DNA of 64,000 nt. It comes from Octopus bimaculoides (taxonomy: Eukaryota). The stretch lies in the NCBI RefSeq assembly GCF_001194135.2, contig NC_068989.1, positions 75,978,452 through 76,042,451 of the forward strand. The letters are read 5' to 3'. The notes beneath the pieces were generated by a model, which saw only the letters and a program-made list of their open reading frames with translations, made no database searches and was not told the origin of the DNA. Below, one piece after another: positions 79 through 62,563 of this stretch (positions within the stretch are counted from its first letter, which is position 1; every line of letters starts with the position of its first letter). The position numbers and the translations under genes are program-made.

Positions 79-137
79 CTATGGTTTTCTCAAGAGAAAA
101 TTCGAGATTACAAATATTATACCAAAGAAACAAATCA
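79..137 (+). CDS. Gene A exon (LWFSQEKIRDYKYYTKETN), homolog of gene B exon 2
   Basis: ttgtatag acceptor, gtaagt donor, 59 nt, phase 0->2; same length and phase as 36813-36871 (MWLSQKESRMYKSY) with similar peptide. Confidence 0.8.
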
Positions 138-489
138 GTAAGTTGCTGGTTTTATTCTCACTTTATAACTCATGTTCCATTGTCCTTGTTGATACCGTTT
201 TTATTGCAGTTCTTATTGTTTAGTTCCGTGTCAAACCTGCACAAAATGATCAGTGACCAAAGGCATTCAGCACACCGAAAACCAATTGTTGTTGTTGTTG
301 TTGTTGTTGTTGTTGTTGTTCTTGTTCTTGTTCTTCTTGTATGAGATCTTTTTGTAAGAAATTTAGGTACAACATATTTAAAACAGACGGTGATGTTTAT
401 AATGTAAATGGAATACCGCTGCTGCAAATAAGATTTGAAATCAGGTCTCGAAATATACAGAACTTCTGGCATTATTAATACGTTTCCCT

Positions 490-1090
490 CGAGGTGGTGA
501 GCTGTCAGAATCGTTAGCACGCCGGGCAAAATGCTTAGCCACTACGTTCTGAGTTCAAATTCCGCCGAGGTTGTCTTTGCATTTCATCTTTTCGGGGTCG
601 ATAAAATAAGCAACCGTCGAGCACTGGAGTCGATGTAATCCCCCTTGTGCCTACAGTAGAAATGATTATTAATGCGTGTCCTAAGGCGGTGAGCTGGCAG
701 AATCTTTAGAACGCCACGCAAAATGCTTAACAGCAGTTCTGAGTTCAAATTCTGCCGAGGTCGAATTTACCTTTCATCTTTTCGGTGTCGACAAAATAAG
801 TCGATGTTCAACTCCTACTTATTCTGAAATTGCTGGCCTTGTCCCAAAACCTGAAGCCTTTATTAAGATGTATCTTAAGGCGGCGAGTTAGCAGAATCGT
901 TAGCATGCCGGATAAAATGCTTAGCGACTTTCCGTTCGTCCTCATGTTCCGAGCTCAAATTCCACCGAGGTCGACTTGCCTTTCATCCTTTCAGGGTCGA
1001 TAAAATAAGTACCAGTTGAGTACTGGGTTGATGTAATCGGCTTAACCCCACAAAAATTTGTGCCAAAATTTGAAATCATTGATAAGCATC
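490..1090 (+). mobile_element. Cluster of three head-to-tail tRNA-derived SINEs (family 'A')
   Basis: Three repeats of ggcggtgagctggcagaatcgttagcacg...gagttcaaattccgccgaggtcgac...gggtcgataaaataagtaccag starting near 490, 685 and 880. Confidence 0.85.
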
Positions 1091-1461
1091 TTAAATGTGT
1101 ACGAAAACAAATTTGTAGTGGGTTTGACTATAATTTTAAAAAATCGATCCTATTTCATGTTTCTTTTACTCATTTACTAGTTTCAATCATTGGACTGCGG
1201 CCATGCTGGGGCACCATATTTAAGTGTTTAGTCGATTACATCGATCTTAGTATTTATTTCAGTCTAATACTCAATTAATCTCTCTCTATTTGTCGGACTG
1301 CTACAAGCATAAAAACAAACAAGACTTCTTTTTCGAAGTGAGCGTCTTAACTACACCACCATGTCAAAGTATAAATGTTTACGCTATATCAAGTAAACTA
1401 ATATTATTCATTCAATAATTTAAATATCTGTCTTCATCTCCTTTTCTTCATTTTACCCTAG

Positions 1462-1523
1462 ATTTTCGCCATATCGGAACAGATCAAATTCTGTTGACGT
1501 TTTAAACTACGTAAGAAAATTTG
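1462..1523 (+). CDS. Gene A exon (FSPYRNRSNSVDVLNYVRKF), homolog of gene B exon 3
   Basis: ttttaccctag acceptor, gtaagt donor, 62 nt, phase 2->1; gene B exon 39699-39760 is also 62 nt with phase 2->1. Confidence 0.8.
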
Positions 1524-1582
1524 GTAAGTATTCATTGCGTAAAGCCCTTTTCTTCTATATGCTGGTTCTCCTGTTACTCAGG

Positions 1583-1963
1583 AGGCGCAATGACCCAGTG
1601 GTTAGGGCAGTGGACTCGCGGTCATAGGATCGCGGTTTCGATTTCCCGACCGGGCGTTGTGAGTGTTTATTGAGCGAAAACACCTAAAGCTCCACGAGGC
1701 TCCGGCATGGGATGGTGGCGAACCCTGCTGTACTCTTTCACCCAAACTTTCTCTCACTCTTACTTCCTGTTTCTGTTGTGCCTGTAATTCAAAGGGTCAG
1801 CCTTGTCACACTGTTTCACACTGAATATCCCCGAGAACTGCGTTAAGGGTATACGTGTCTGTGGAGTGCTCAGCCACTTGCACGTTAATTTCACGAGCAG
1901 GCTGTTCCGTTGATCGGATCAACTGGAACCCTTGACGTCGTAAGCGAAGGAGTGCCAACAACT
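1583..1963 (+). mobile_element. Full-length tRNA-derived SINE (family 'B') with TSD tgttactca
   Basis: A/B-box-like head (tgacccagtggttagggc...ggtttcgatttccc), tail ...gtgccaacaac; tgttactca at 1572-1580 and 1964-1972. Confidence 0.85.
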
Positions 1964-59931: not shown

Positions 59932-59951
59932 GTAAGTACAGATCTCGTTTA

Positions 59952-60642
59952 ATATTTTTACCTAAGAAAGGCAGCGAGCTGGCAGAAACGTTAGCACGCC
60001 AGGCAAAATGTTTAGCAGTATTTCCTGTCTTTACGTTCTGAGTTCAAATTCCGCCGAGGTCGACTTTGCCTTTCATCCTTTAGGGGGCGATTAAATAAGT
60101 ACCAGTTACGCACTGGGGTCGATATAATCGACTTAATCCCTTTGTCGGTCCATGTTTGTCCTCTCTATGTTTAGCCCCCTGTAGGCAATAAAGAAATAAA
60201 TATTTTTACCTAAGAAAAGCGATGAGCTGGCAGAAACGTTAACACGCCGGGCAAAATGCTTAGCGGAATTTCGTCTGTGTTTATGTTCTGAGTTCAAATT
60301 CCGCCGAGGTCGACTTTGCCTTTCATCCTTTCGGGGTCGATAAATTAAGTACCATTTGCGTACTGGGATCGATCTAATCGACTGGCCCCCTCCCCCAAAA
60401 TTTCGGGCCTCGTGCCTAGAGTAGAAAAGTATATTTTTACCTACGACTAAGGCGGTGAGCTGGCAGAATCGTTAGCGCGCCGGATAAAATGCTTAGCGAC
60501 ATTTCATCCGTCTACATGTTCTTAGTTCAAATTGCACCGATGCCGACTTTGTTTATCACCCTTTTGGGGTTGATAAAATAAGTACCCCTTACTTTGAAAT
60601 TGCTTCTAATGTGCCAAAATTTGAAATCAATATTTTTACCTA
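59952..60642 (+). mobile_element. Three stacked family A SINEs separated by four copies of atatttttaccta
   Basis: Motif at 59952, 60200, 60431 and 60630; each SINE has a different 3' tail. Confidence 0.9.
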
Positions 60643-61123
60643 ACATCATAATTAGATAAACAGCATCGAGCTTAATTACCTCTCTTTAAACGACTAAATG
60701 TTTTTTTTTCTGTTTTATACTTATTTGTAATCATCAAACAGTCTGCCTCCAAACGTGTGTCCAAATTAATGATAATCGTTAATTAATATTAACATGAACC
60801 ACTAAGATAAAGCTGACACTTGGTGAGACTGTACATTTCAAGTTAACAGGAAAAGTTATAATCGTACGAAAAACACTATCATCTAACAAAAATGTGTATA
60901 TGTTACGTATGCAAAAATCACATCCAAGACAACGGGCAGTATATAGTGATGCGGCCAATTTTCAGTACAGATAGAAAAAGAAGATACTGGGTGGGGGGTA
61001 AAAGAAATAACAGATAGTGTCAGTTCTAGAATAAAATACTACTGAAAATGCGTTTAGGTACACTTGAAATGTTACATTGCATGTATTTAAACTTGTCTTT
61101 TTTGTTTCCATTTTAAAATAAAG

Positions 61124-61190
61124 GGAGGGAAAACTAAAAACCCAAAGAAGACGAAGTGTACTCGGAGTGTACCAAGTTCAAAGAAGCAAG
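61124..61190 (+). CDS. Gene B probable exon 9 (GGKTKNPKKTKCTRSVPSSKKQ)
   Basis: aataaag/gtagga, 67 nt, phase 0->1; in frame with exons 8 and 10. Confidence 0.6.
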
Positions 61191-62276
61191 GTAGGAAAGT
61201 ATGTTCTATCAAATTTTTCCATTATATATATATATATACATATATACACGTGCTTTCCTTGTGGAGTACAACTTAGTATACGATTCTCTAAATTACATCT
61301 ATCCAACGTTCTGTACTGATGAGGAAAAGATATTTTCGGTAAGAAAATGTTAATTTCGAAACATGTTTGCAGATAATTGTATTATTTCGTGTAATTTTCA
61401 CTGGTCTTGCCCGCTTTACGCTTTTGTTGCTTCGCTAAATTCCCTTTAAGAATTATTCGGTCTTCGTAGACACATGACATGTGATCTTCTTCTAGCACAT
61501 GACCAGTCCACCTACTGGCCTCCTGTATATATACTCGTGTATATTTTTATATAAACATATGCGATAATCCTTGAGATCTCAGATATTTTTTCTGAATCTC
61601 CCTGATTCTTTCAATGTGCTAGTTACCTGGTATTAAATTGATATTAATTAATATCCAATTTTTTACCCCATTGTTTAATATATATATATATATATATATA
61701 TATATATATATTACTCCTACCGACCTTCTCTCTTCATTTCCAATTGACGACCGGAAATGTGAGACTTTTGTGAATCTTCTCCTGAAGGGAAGGCCATTAT
61801 CTTTGAATTTCCTTAATGGATTTTTATATTAACGAAGTGGGGCAACATCTTTTGAAGCGATCGTAGAGATGGATTTCAATGGACTCTTTTCTTGTTACCA
61901 CTTTGCCCTTCATTTATATTTCTTTTATTTTAATTCCATTGCCTTAAGTTTTTAGTCGCTTTTATTATGCATAAATTTAATCCATATATTTTTCATCATT
62001 CGACTTCACTCGTATTGCCCTTTTAGGTTTTATAACCTTTTATTCGTATATATGTGTATATGTTATATTGGGTTTTATCATTGGATGCCCTGATGTTTTA
62101 ATATTTATGTTTGATTTAATATTTGTGTTTGATTTATGATAATATGGGAATGTTATAAAGTTGTTTTGACCAATTGGAGCGTTTATTCATTATTCCTTTC
62201 AATTTATGTTTCCTTTCGTCTCAGTGTTACACACACATATATATGTGCATGTATATATATATGTTTATGTTTACAG

Positions 62277-62563
62277 ACATACTTCCATCAGCAGTAGTTG
62301 AAGAACGTGAAATTTCTTCCGATGCATCAACCAGTGTTTCGACAAATCTCCAATTTTTTTATCTTGGTACATACAATGAAACAGAAGACGCAAACGAGAA
62401 AAAAACGAAGAAACTGTTTGTAATTATAAACTTTTGTACTAAGTCCTTGCTTGCGTATTTGCGACGTAGTAACCTCTGTCGAGACTGTTCCAAAAGTACT
62501 TTTTTTTTCGTCTGTTTAACACATGTTTATAGTTTTGGAACGATATTTTCTTTTCTACTCTAG
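62277..62563 (+). CDS. Gene B probable last exon (DILPSAVVEEREISSDASTSVS...); 3' boundary uncertain
   Basis: gtttacag acceptor, phase 1 entry; frame runs to TAG at 62561-62563 inside an antisense SINE end; an alternative donor exists at 62366/62367. Confidence 0.5.

Follow-up and report, generated by a model that had tools for sequence, protein, structure and literature searches.

Tandem octopus genes for PH-PH proteins with a probable split, REM-less CDC25 domain and likely kinship to an uncharacterized bilaterian family

Two tandem RasGEF genes in the octopus genome

The stretch of DNA analyzed here, 64,000 nucleotides of the Octopus bimaculoides genome (NC_068989.1, positions 75,978,452 to 76,042,451; hereafter, the window), carries two genes, called A and B below, which encode proteins with a Ras-type guanine nucleotide exchange factor (RasGEF) domain. 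Taken as a whole, the evidence makes it likely that the two genes are tandem octopus paralogs whose products combine two PH domains with a split CDC25 domain lacking REM, that they form a divergent branch of an uncharacterized bilaterian family, and that their products are probable PH-targeted guanine nucleotide exchange factors (GEFs). Ras, Rap, and Ral are activated mainly by CDC25-type exchange factors, whose animal subfamilies are, to our knowledge, considered fully catalogued. The locus points to a further, unnamed subfamily, in which REM is absent, the helical hairpin carries a long disordered insertion, and one or two PH domains come first.

Gene A corresponds to LOC106868253 and, by protein match, to the O. 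bimaculoides UniProt entry A0A0L8HX69 ("Ras-GEF domain-containing protein"). Gene B corresponds to LOC106868254, and its product showed 99% identity to XP_014768912.1 ("uncharacterized protein LOC106868254 isoform X2"). The RefSeq X1 isoforms comprise 1573 amino acids (aa) for gene A and 1114 aa for gene B. Both genes are already annotated but uncharacterized, and neither the split-domain reading nor the wider family appears to have been described. The genes lie on the plus strand and are separated by 13.7 kb, from the end of the A stop codon at 17995 to the B ATG at 31739, which agrees with the spacing of about 14 kb given in an earlier reading of the window made from the letters alone (hereafter, the sequence-only reading). 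That reading interpreted the pair as a lineage-specific, tandemly expanded, and fast-evolving family of PH-PH-RasGEF proteins with a long disordered tail. Its observation was confirmed, but its interpretation was supported only in part and was revised in three respects: the architecture of the proteins, the breadth of the family, and the extent of the expansion.

The window cuts gene A at its 5' end and gene B at its 3' end. The truncation of gene A had been recognized from the letters, and the missing first coding exon (aa 1 to 442, containing both PH domains) was found about 3 to 4.3 kb upstream of the window in the flanks taken from CM046609.1. The chromosome record has a 1301-nt assembly gap immediately before window position 1, and therefore the intron between this exon and the 59-nt exon of gene A is only partly sequenced. 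The last two exons of gene B are located 0.8 to 3.7 kb beyond the 3' end of the window, at the window-equivalent positions ~64828-64893 and ~67356-67658. The 3' limit of 62563 that was previously assigned is the end of an open reading frame only; the true exon inside it spans 62277-62419.

A RasGEF core without a REM domain

Pfam searches, which the sequence-only reading had proposed as a check, matched the RasGEF domain (PF00617) well above threshold, with 89.1 bits (E = 4.2e-25) for gene B and 78.9 bits (E = 5.6e-22) for gene A against a gathering cutoff of 23.1; the PH clan was matched below threshold only. The PF00617 match covered positions 2 to 159 of the profile and ended there, at 159 of 181. 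The GEF cores of A and B were 51.6% identical (E = 4e-75), and the motifs LAxELT, NFNT, N.RSYRN, and PPYIPW were found, which bears out the CDC25-type motifs and the 40 to 60% identity within the GEF domain that had been read from the sequence.

Two AlphaFold2 (AF2) models of the gene B protein were examined, one of isoform X2 built with the alignment A2 and one of isoform X1 built with the alignment A5 (47 sequences). The GEF core (gene B aa 490 to 662) was modeled with a predicted local distance difference test (pLDDT) score of 89 to 98. Foldseek placed this core beside the solved structures of RasGRF1 (2ije) and RalGPS1 (3qxl), with root mean square deviations of 1.9 to 3.4 Å and target TM-scores (TMt) of 0.60 to 0.63. 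Yeast Cdc25, RasGRP2/4, Epac2, and SOS were further matches.

The REM domain (RasGEF_N, PF00618) was unmatched at E ≤ 1 in the four octopus proteins that were scanned, and the region before the core was modeled as a few low-confidence helices with no REM-like fold. The earlier statement that no REM is recognizable thus stands. The mid-region of gene B (aa 250 to 422) and the linker were also considered as a cryptic REM domain. This candidate was rejected: the pLDDT was below 50, there was no PF00618 match, and the mid-region showed a ratio of nonsynonymous to synonymous substitution rates (dN/dS) of about 1.

A conserved module after the disordered region

What had been described as a long disordered tail is not a tail, because a conserved and confidently modeled GEF module follows it in the last exon. 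Between the core and this module lies a disordered region of about 330 (B) or 800 (A) residues. In the AF2 model of gene B, the pLDDT fell below 50 from aa 665 on, over about 400 residues, and rose to 90 to 94 in three C-terminal helices (aa 1070 to 1082, 1090 to 1098, and 1104 to 1113). The last exon of gene A shares a 64-residue block with the C terminus of Octopus vulgaris B (53% identity). The block is also present in O. bimaculoides B isoform X1, and the identity between A and B is 53 to 55%.

The octopus block aligns column for column with a module found at the C terminus of the wider family described below, L...Q.AA..Y.F...A.EFLLKARY.ED.ENF..SL.LEP. A hidden Markov model (HMM) of this module, built from 41 non-octopus sequences, matched the exact C termini of both octopus proteins, with independent E values (i-E) of 1.9e-6 for A and 3.1e-4 for B. 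When the module profile was compared with the PDB, the top three matches included the end of RasGRP2 (373-392 of 397) and the end of RalGPS1 (235-270 of 271). In addition, the module of a nemertean homolog aligned with the ends of the RalGPS1 and RasGRF1 CDC25 domains, in alignments that were weak but positionally consistent. We take this to mean that the last exon would supply helices alphaI to alphaK and so complete the CDC25 fold. The supposed tail would then be an insertion that interrupts the helical hairpin at its tip, behind a shortened alphaH, as the alignments and the models together suggest.

The statement that the two proteins are unalignable outside the GEF domain holds for the insertion. 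It does not hold for the N-terminal 412 residues, which are 32.5% identical, or for the C-terminal module. For each of these parts, one of the two genes has its copy beyond the limits of the window.

Before the C-terminal helices, both octopus proteins carry the motif W-x-C-x2-C-G-x-D-[IV]-C-I-Y-A-D-L-P, which is located at 17798-17863 in gene A and outside the window in gene B. Its three invariant Cys residues are kept between A and B and between the two octopus species, and it was modeled as a low-confidence beta hairpin. The nemertean and insect homologs lack the motif, which is a possible metal-binding knuckle.

Doubled PH domains at the N terminus

In gene B, PH1 (aa 13 to 109) and PH2 (aa 147 to 249) each consisted of seven strands and a long helix, as assigned by DSSP on the AF2 models. 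The N-terminal domain of the wider family was aligned to PH1 in the first model and to PH2 in the second. The pLDDT was 75 to 86 for PH1 (about 80 to 86 in the first model) and 85 to 92 for PH2 in the second model. Foldseek matched the gene B N terminus to the PH domain of Bcr (TMt, 0.65) and to the DH-PH-PH structures of FARP1/2. Residue W97 was invariant in the alignment A2, fitting the Trp of the PH helix. For gene A, the PH domains are supported by sequence, namely by 32.5% identity to the B N terminus and by the same internal repeat. The two PH-like domains proposed earlier were therefore borne out by structure prediction for B and by sequence for A.

PH1 and PH2 were 27% identical to each other (E = 5e-8), and the repeat was the same in both paralogs, which indicates that the doubled PH domain arose by internal duplication. 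No PH-clan family in Pfam matched above threshold; the matches below it were Myosin_TH1 (E = 0.004), bPH_3 (E = 0.2), and PH_SLA1 (E = 0.29).

Conservation and selection between two octopus species

The orthologous locus of O. vulgaris spans 97.7 kb without any N and contains the same two genes in the same order. The exon lengths were equal to those of O. bimaculoides, except for in-frame differences of 36 nt in the large exon of A and 3 nt in the first exon of B. All AG/GT splice sites were conserved, and both reading frames were intact. The presence of the same pair in O. vulgaris shows that the duplication is older than the split of the two species; the tandem duplication of A and B is specific to the octopus lineage.

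The window has a G+C content of 35.6% and contains ten runs of N, six of them intronic and four in the intergenic spacer, none of which overlaps an exon. The nearest run ends 102 nt upstream of the 59-nt exon of B. Four runs (36093-36711, 37810-38044, 40506-40980, and 49789-50135) were absent from the list made by the scan program. Because the O. vulgaris locus is intact and free of gaps, the gaps of the window hide no necessary coding sequence.

We estimated dN/dS between O. bimaculoides and O. vulgaris by the Nei-Gojobori method. The values were 0.17 (A) and 0.23 (B) for the GEF core, 0.12 for the C-terminal module, 0.05 (A) and 0.46 (B) for the three linker exons, 0.27 for PH2, and 0.46 for PH1. 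In contrast, the mid-region of B reached 0.97, and the insertion reached 1.26 in A and 1.20 in B. The description of the family as fast evolving is thus accurate for the insertion and the mid-region (about 1.0 to 1.26), but the folded domains are under purifying selection (0.05 to 0.46).

The divergence of the insertion was 8.5%, compared with 5 to 12% in the neighboring introns. All seven indels in the large exon of A were in frame, compared with 12 of 50 in four introns. Among 194 substitutions in the A insertion, none created a stop codon; about 5% of the possible substitutions would do so. This pattern fits a spacer of unconstrained sequence that is read through to reach a functional downstream element, the frame being kept because the C-terminal helices must be translated.

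These results also bear on whether one or both genes could be decaying pseudogenes or annotation artifacts stitched across assembly gaps. The many N gaps in the B introns are what an artifact might leave behind, and the database models do disagree with each other: A0A0L8HX69 is without PH2, XP_036362857 is a fusion, and isoform X2 of gene B ends in a 21-nt exon. However, the O. vulgaris locus, which has no gaps, conserves all of the exons, splice sites, and frames, the dN/dS values of the domains are well below 1, and the frame was kept across 720 neutrally evolving codons. Neutral drift with a kept frame argues against a pseudogene, and we give this explanation almost no credence.

An uncharacterized family in several bilaterian groups

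Relatives were sought among 1.84 billion representative proteins. Below an E value of 1e-30, only octopus sequences were found. The next tier, from 1e-25 to 1e-10, consisted of uncharacterized proteins with the C-terminal module, annotated as "uncharacterized" or "Ras-GEF domain-containing." They included proteins of the nemerteans Lineus longissimus (LOC135492746) and Tubulanus polymorphus (LOC141912625), of the sea star Patiria miniata (LOC119739611), and of insects from at least seven orders (beetles, ants, parasitoid wasps, a planthopper, a louse, dragonflies, damselflies, grasshoppers, and a cockroach). Among the best 145 non-octopus matches, 30 had the PH-like domain, 55 had the C-terminal module, and 29 had both; many of the others were fragments.

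The N-terminal domain of these proteins is of the type ..ESPF....G.G.RQV..LT..L..A...FEL...W..W, and its alignment with octopus PH2 is convincing by eye. An HMM built from 28 non-octopus sequences matched the whole of PH2 (i-E = 7e-6 for B and 1.6e-6 for A) as well as the C-terminal half of octopus PH1. Pfam holds no model for this domain. The linker pattern ..W.SQ...R.YK.Y was also compared with the insect motif FWTP.YWYRP, and the alignment was unconvincing.

The family shares with the octopus proteins an N-terminal PH-like domain homologous to PH2 and PH1, a REM-less core whose Pfam match extends only to about 159 to 166 of 181, and an extra segment after the PP..P helix followed by the C-terminal module. 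It differs in having one PH domain rather than two and in the segment between core and module, which comprises 13 to 267 residues (median, about 80), so that the octopus insertion is 4 to 10 times longer. The octopus proteins further differ by the extra Cys motif, a more degenerate alphaH, the presence of two tandem paralogs, and a GEF-core identity to the family of only 22 to 30%.

In a neighbor-joining (NJ) tree of the GEF cores built with capped distances, octopus A and B were monophyletic in 100 of 100 bootstraps, and their nearest neighbors were family members in 85 of 100. The octopus clade, on a long branch, was placed in a clade of all 32 family members and four other matches. The nearest NJ neighbors of the octopus clade were the sequences P0068 and P0092, the latter with a PH-like domain. 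The two may be closer relatives, such as other lophotrochozoans. A search with the full-length family alignment, in which the 8000 word-richest candidates were scored, returned the octopus proteins and fungal Bud5-like GEFs, and a search with the alignment of core plus module gave six matches, mostly fragments, with no new taxa. A literature search gave no description or published name for the family. No standard model organism was present among the approximately 25 matches whose source organism was looked up, and the family may have been overlooked owing to this apparent lack of model-organism members.

The sequence-only reading had instead proposed a lineage-specific family, taken here as one of octopuses or mollusks, expanding in tandem and evolving fast, with a disordered C-terminal tail and possibly more copies nearby. 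In its favor, only octopus sequences passed the E value of 1e-30, the octopus cores are at most 30% identical to any non-octopus match and form a single clade, and no protein outside octopus showed a doubled PH domain or so long an insertion. However, nemerteans, insects, and a sea star have homologous PH-like, core, and C-terminal modules, and the presumed tail is followed by a conserved GEF module. One tandem duplication did take place, but the expansion stops at two copies. No third paralog was found within 10 kb upstream of A, where further copies had been suspected, or within 10 kb downstream of B, both flanks containing gaps, and no third octopus-type paralog was found at E < 1e-30 among the representative proteins. 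The dN/dS of the folded domains is 0.05 to 0.46. On balance, we consider a lineage-specific family of this kind very unlikely.

Possible function and the question of catalysis

In the reading that we prefer, the PH domains would recruit the protein to a membrane or to a partner, and the reassembled CDC25 domain would bind a Ras-family GTPase and promote nucleotide exchange. Ral, Rap, or Ras would be candidate substrates because RalGPS1 is the nearest solved relative. The insertion would form a flexible loop at the hairpin tip, with a possible regulatory role. More tentatively, the locus could represent an ancient bilaterian RasGEF subfamily in which the octopus insertion controls GTPase access by serving as a regulated gate or tether, a new form of control of a CDC25-type domain; we regard this extension as a possibility that is less likely to hold than to fail.

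Several observations speak against the preferred reading. SOS1 Leu938 and Glu942 have roles in SOS-Ras exchange, and in a transitive, ungapped alignment with SOS1, Leu938 is replaced by Ala or Ile and Glu942 by Trp in the octopus proteins. They also have Phe or Ser at the conserved Gly of the hairpin and a Pro inside alphaH, and the modeled alphaH has only about 9 residues (gene B aa 654 to 662). An intact hairpin with catalytic-side residues of the SOS1 Leu938/Glu942 type is thus not what the octopus proteins have. The PDB matches of the module profile were individually nonsignificant (E = 0.3 to 0.65), and the Foldseek alignments of the second model did not bridge the insertion. That the C-terminal helices pack onto the core is deduced from a model in which helices with a pLDDT of 90 to 94 stand beside regions below 35. 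The mean identity of the octopus core to the family, 22 to 24%, is not above that to other RasGEFs, so that membership in the family rests mainly on the architecture and on the PH-like and C-terminal modules. Finally, the exon junctions rest on RefSeq predictions and on conservation between species.

On the alignments and models, catalysis by the octopus GEF domain is doubtful, and a pseudo-GEF scaffold has to be weighed. The split CDC25 domain would then fold without catalyzing exchange and would serve as a PH-tethered module that binds proteins or sequesters GTPases, as in BCAR3/NSP. The short and degenerate alphaH of both paralogs, with its substituted Leu938, Glu942, and Gly positions and its internal Pro, would be expected of such a protein. 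The insertion of 330 to 800 residues at the hairpin tip and the end of the Pfam coverage at position 159 point the same way, and purifying selection on the domain is as expected for a functional binding module. However, in the alignment RalGPS1 also lacks an acidic residue at the position equivalent to Glu942, and RalGPS is an active GEF; the degenerate octopus hairpin is therefore suggestive but not decisive. Other family members keep Leu at the position of Leu938 and have a more regular helix, PP.LP.IG..L..LL. No BCAR3/NSP structure was among the top 50 Foldseek matches, and activity cannot be read from sequence. We consider a pseudo-GEF scaffold unlikely but deserving of serious attention.

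Either outcome would be informative. Activity of the octopus proteins would show that the hairpin can accommodate a very large insertion and would make them a natural system for testing how a REM-less GEF is stabilized and regulated. If they are inactive, they represent a second lineage of CDC25-like pseudoenzymes.

Exon maps and database annotation

The GT-AG exon chains were solved exactly, and the spliced translations equal the database proteins (Table 1). As noted previously from the letters, A and B have four exon lengths in common (59, 62, 129, and 134 nt) and identical intron phases. The unequal pairs of 88/85 and 133/124 nt differ by 3 and 9 nt, which are multiples of 3. The phases are 2,1,2,0,0,2,0 in both genes, and if gene B is spliced from the X1 donor at 61190, the eighth phase (1) is shared as well.

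The donors of gene B isoforms X1 (61190) and X2 (61198) are separated by 8 nt and are joined to a common acceptor at 62277, so that the next exon is read in two frames. Since the X2 donor reads GC in O. vulgaris, isoform X2 is probably a prediction artifact or a minor form.

Other records of the pair are also inconsistent. Compared with RefSeq X1, A0A0L8HX69 lacks most of PH2. The O. vulgaris protein XP_036362857 is a chimera in which the GEF core and insertion of A are fused to the N terminus of B, and it omits the last GEF-core exon and the large exon of B. In Octopus sinensis, the annotation divides B between two loci, LOC118765176 and LOC118765225. If the last exon encodes part of the catalytic domain, gene models that terminate in the large exon, omit the last one, or fuse A and B would be wrong or incomplete, and several such models of A and B are present in databases.

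Table 1. Exons and other features of the window (positions counted from its first letter)
Feature	Position	Strand	Length	Basis or content
Gene A linker exon, first A exon in window	79..137	+	59 nt	Exact splice solution
Gene A linker exon	1462..1523	+	62 nt	Length and splice sites same in O. vulgaris
Gene A linker exon	5574..5661	+	88 nt	Splice solution, O. vulgaris
Gene A exon, GEF core start (LACELT)	7653..7785	+	133 nt	PF00617 at aa 331-491 of A0A0L8HX69
Gene A GEF-core exon	8513..8641	+	129 nt	Splice solution
Gene A GEF-core exon (NFNT)	10076..10209	+	134 nt	Splice solution
Gene A exon	12621..14943	+	2323 nt	About 55 codons of GEF core end (NCRSYRN, PPYIPW, short alphaH), then disordered insertion of about 720 codons
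Gene A exon, insertion end	16115..16214	+	100 nt	Splice solution, O. vulgaris; next intron phase 1
Gene A last exon	17625..17995	+	371 nt incl. stop	Cys motif and C-terminal module (putative alphaI-alphaK)
Intergenic spacer	17996..31738		13.7 kb	Four N gaps, SINE-like repeats, degenerate open frames without Pfam match
Gene B first coding exon	31739..33004	+	1266 nt	PH1 (aa ~13-109), PH2 (aa ~147-249), mid-region (aa 250-422)
Gene B linker exon	36813..36871	+	59 nt	Gap 36093-36711 ends 102 nt upstream
Gene B linker exon	39699..39760	+	62 nt	Splice solution, O. vulgaris
Gene B linker exon	46888..46972	+	85 nt	Splice solution, O. vulgaris
Gene B exon, GEF core start (LAFELT)	51867..51990	+	124 nt	PF00617 at aa 502-661
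Gene B GEF-core exon	52295..52423	+	129 nt	
Gene B GEF-core exon	56397..56530	+	134 nt	
Gene B exon	59025..59931	+	907 nt	GEF core end (PPYIPW, alphaH), then disordered insertion
Gene B insertion exon	61124..61190 (X1, phase 1) or 61198 (X2)	+	67 or 75 nt	
Gene B exon (X1, DILPSAVVEE...KKLF)	62277..62419	+	143 nt	X2 stops at 62297 (21 nt)
SINE-like repeat copies	492-1013, 9535-9655, 10897-11034, 16901-17040, 23209-23345, 25922-26290, 33329-33433, 36963-37069, 39441-39621, 40171-40314, 42101-42239, 43520-43843, 54805-54940, 57472-57613, 59968-60660			

Repeats and other sequence features

About 22 copies of a repeat of approximately 140 nt resembling a short interspersed nuclear element (SINE) were found on both strands, distributed over the spacer and the A and B introns, with 69 to 82% identity. 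When translated, they give GGELAESLARRAKCLA...VLSSNSAEVDFAFHPFGVDK strings, which dominate a naive tBLASTn comparison of A with B. A stretch of 137 nt at 15093-15228 in intron 7 of A is 83% identical to 29256-29392, which lies 2.3 kb upstream of the B start; it is probably a dispersed repeat rather than a duplication boundary.

Open frames resembling degenerate transposon remnants are present in the spacer (19540-19959 and 22071-23104, plus strand) and in intron 6 of A (11877-12413, minus strand). The frame at 22071-23104 contains 12 stop codons, and none of these frames had a Pfam match at E ≤ 0.01. Rfam and tRNA scans of the window gave no match.

The 129-nt exon of A is flanked by simple repeats: a (CT)n microsatellite at 8386-8465 ends about 45 nt before its acceptor, and a TACA-type tetranucleotide array at 8680-9050 begins about 40 nt beyond its donor. 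In O. vulgaris, the intron preceding this exon measures 2.4 kb, compared with 0.7 kb in O. bimaculoides.

Comparison with known exchange factors

BCAR3/NSP proteins contain a CDC25-like pseudo-GEF domain with degenerate catalytic elements, which is used as a binding module. Their likeness to the octopus proteins is a possible functional analogy only; in contrast to them, the octopus proteins have no SH2 domain, and they had no sequence or fold match to BCAR3/NSP among the top matches.

The classical REM-CDC25 RasGEFs (SOS1, RasGRF1, RasGRP, Epac2, yeast Cdc25, and RalGDS/Rlf) have the same fold as the octopus core (Foldseek E = 1e-7 to 1e-5) and share its motifs LA..LT, NFN, and PP..P. The REM domain of these proteins buttresses the helical hairpin, and in SOS the hairpin opens the GTPase. 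The octopus proteins differ in that REM is absent, the hairpin would be interrupted, and the catalytic-side residues are not conserved.

The mismatch with SOS, RasGRF, RasGRP, RalGDS, RalGPS, and RapGEF that had been noted from the letters was upheld. The best solved relative of octopus B was RalGPS1 (E = 7e-9), and RasGRF1 and Cdc25 scored nearly as well. The nemertean member also matched RalGPS1 best (1.2e-26), followed by RasGRF1 (7e-24) and SOS1 (1e-21). This ranking, together with the absence of REM in both groups, is what could be expected if the octopus genes belonged, as divergent orthologs, to an established subfamily, of which RalGPS would be the most plausible. However, the identity to RalGPS1 is only about 22 to 24%, and for the nemertean member RasGRF1 and SOS1 come close to RalGPS1 in score. 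The domain order is also opposite: RalGPS consists of an N-terminal CDC25 domain, a PxxP region, and a single C-terminal PH domain, whereas in the octopus proteins PH1 and PH2 come before the GEF domain, with no PH fold after it. Neither a hairpin insertion nor an N-terminal PH-like domain is a RalGPS feature, and the crystallized CDC25 domain of RalGPS1 is a compact chain of 271 residues with no comparable insertion. Orthology to RalGPS is therefore extremely improbable.

An uncharacterized bilaterian family with a probable split CDC25 domain remains our preferred reading, and RalGPS1/2 (3qxl) provides its closest structural counterpart. Both have a PH domain and lack REM. The CDC25 core of RalGPS1 superposes on the octopus model at about 2 to 3 Å over 164 to 183 columns, and its C-terminal ...NYKLSLRIEP aligns with the C-terminal module of the family.

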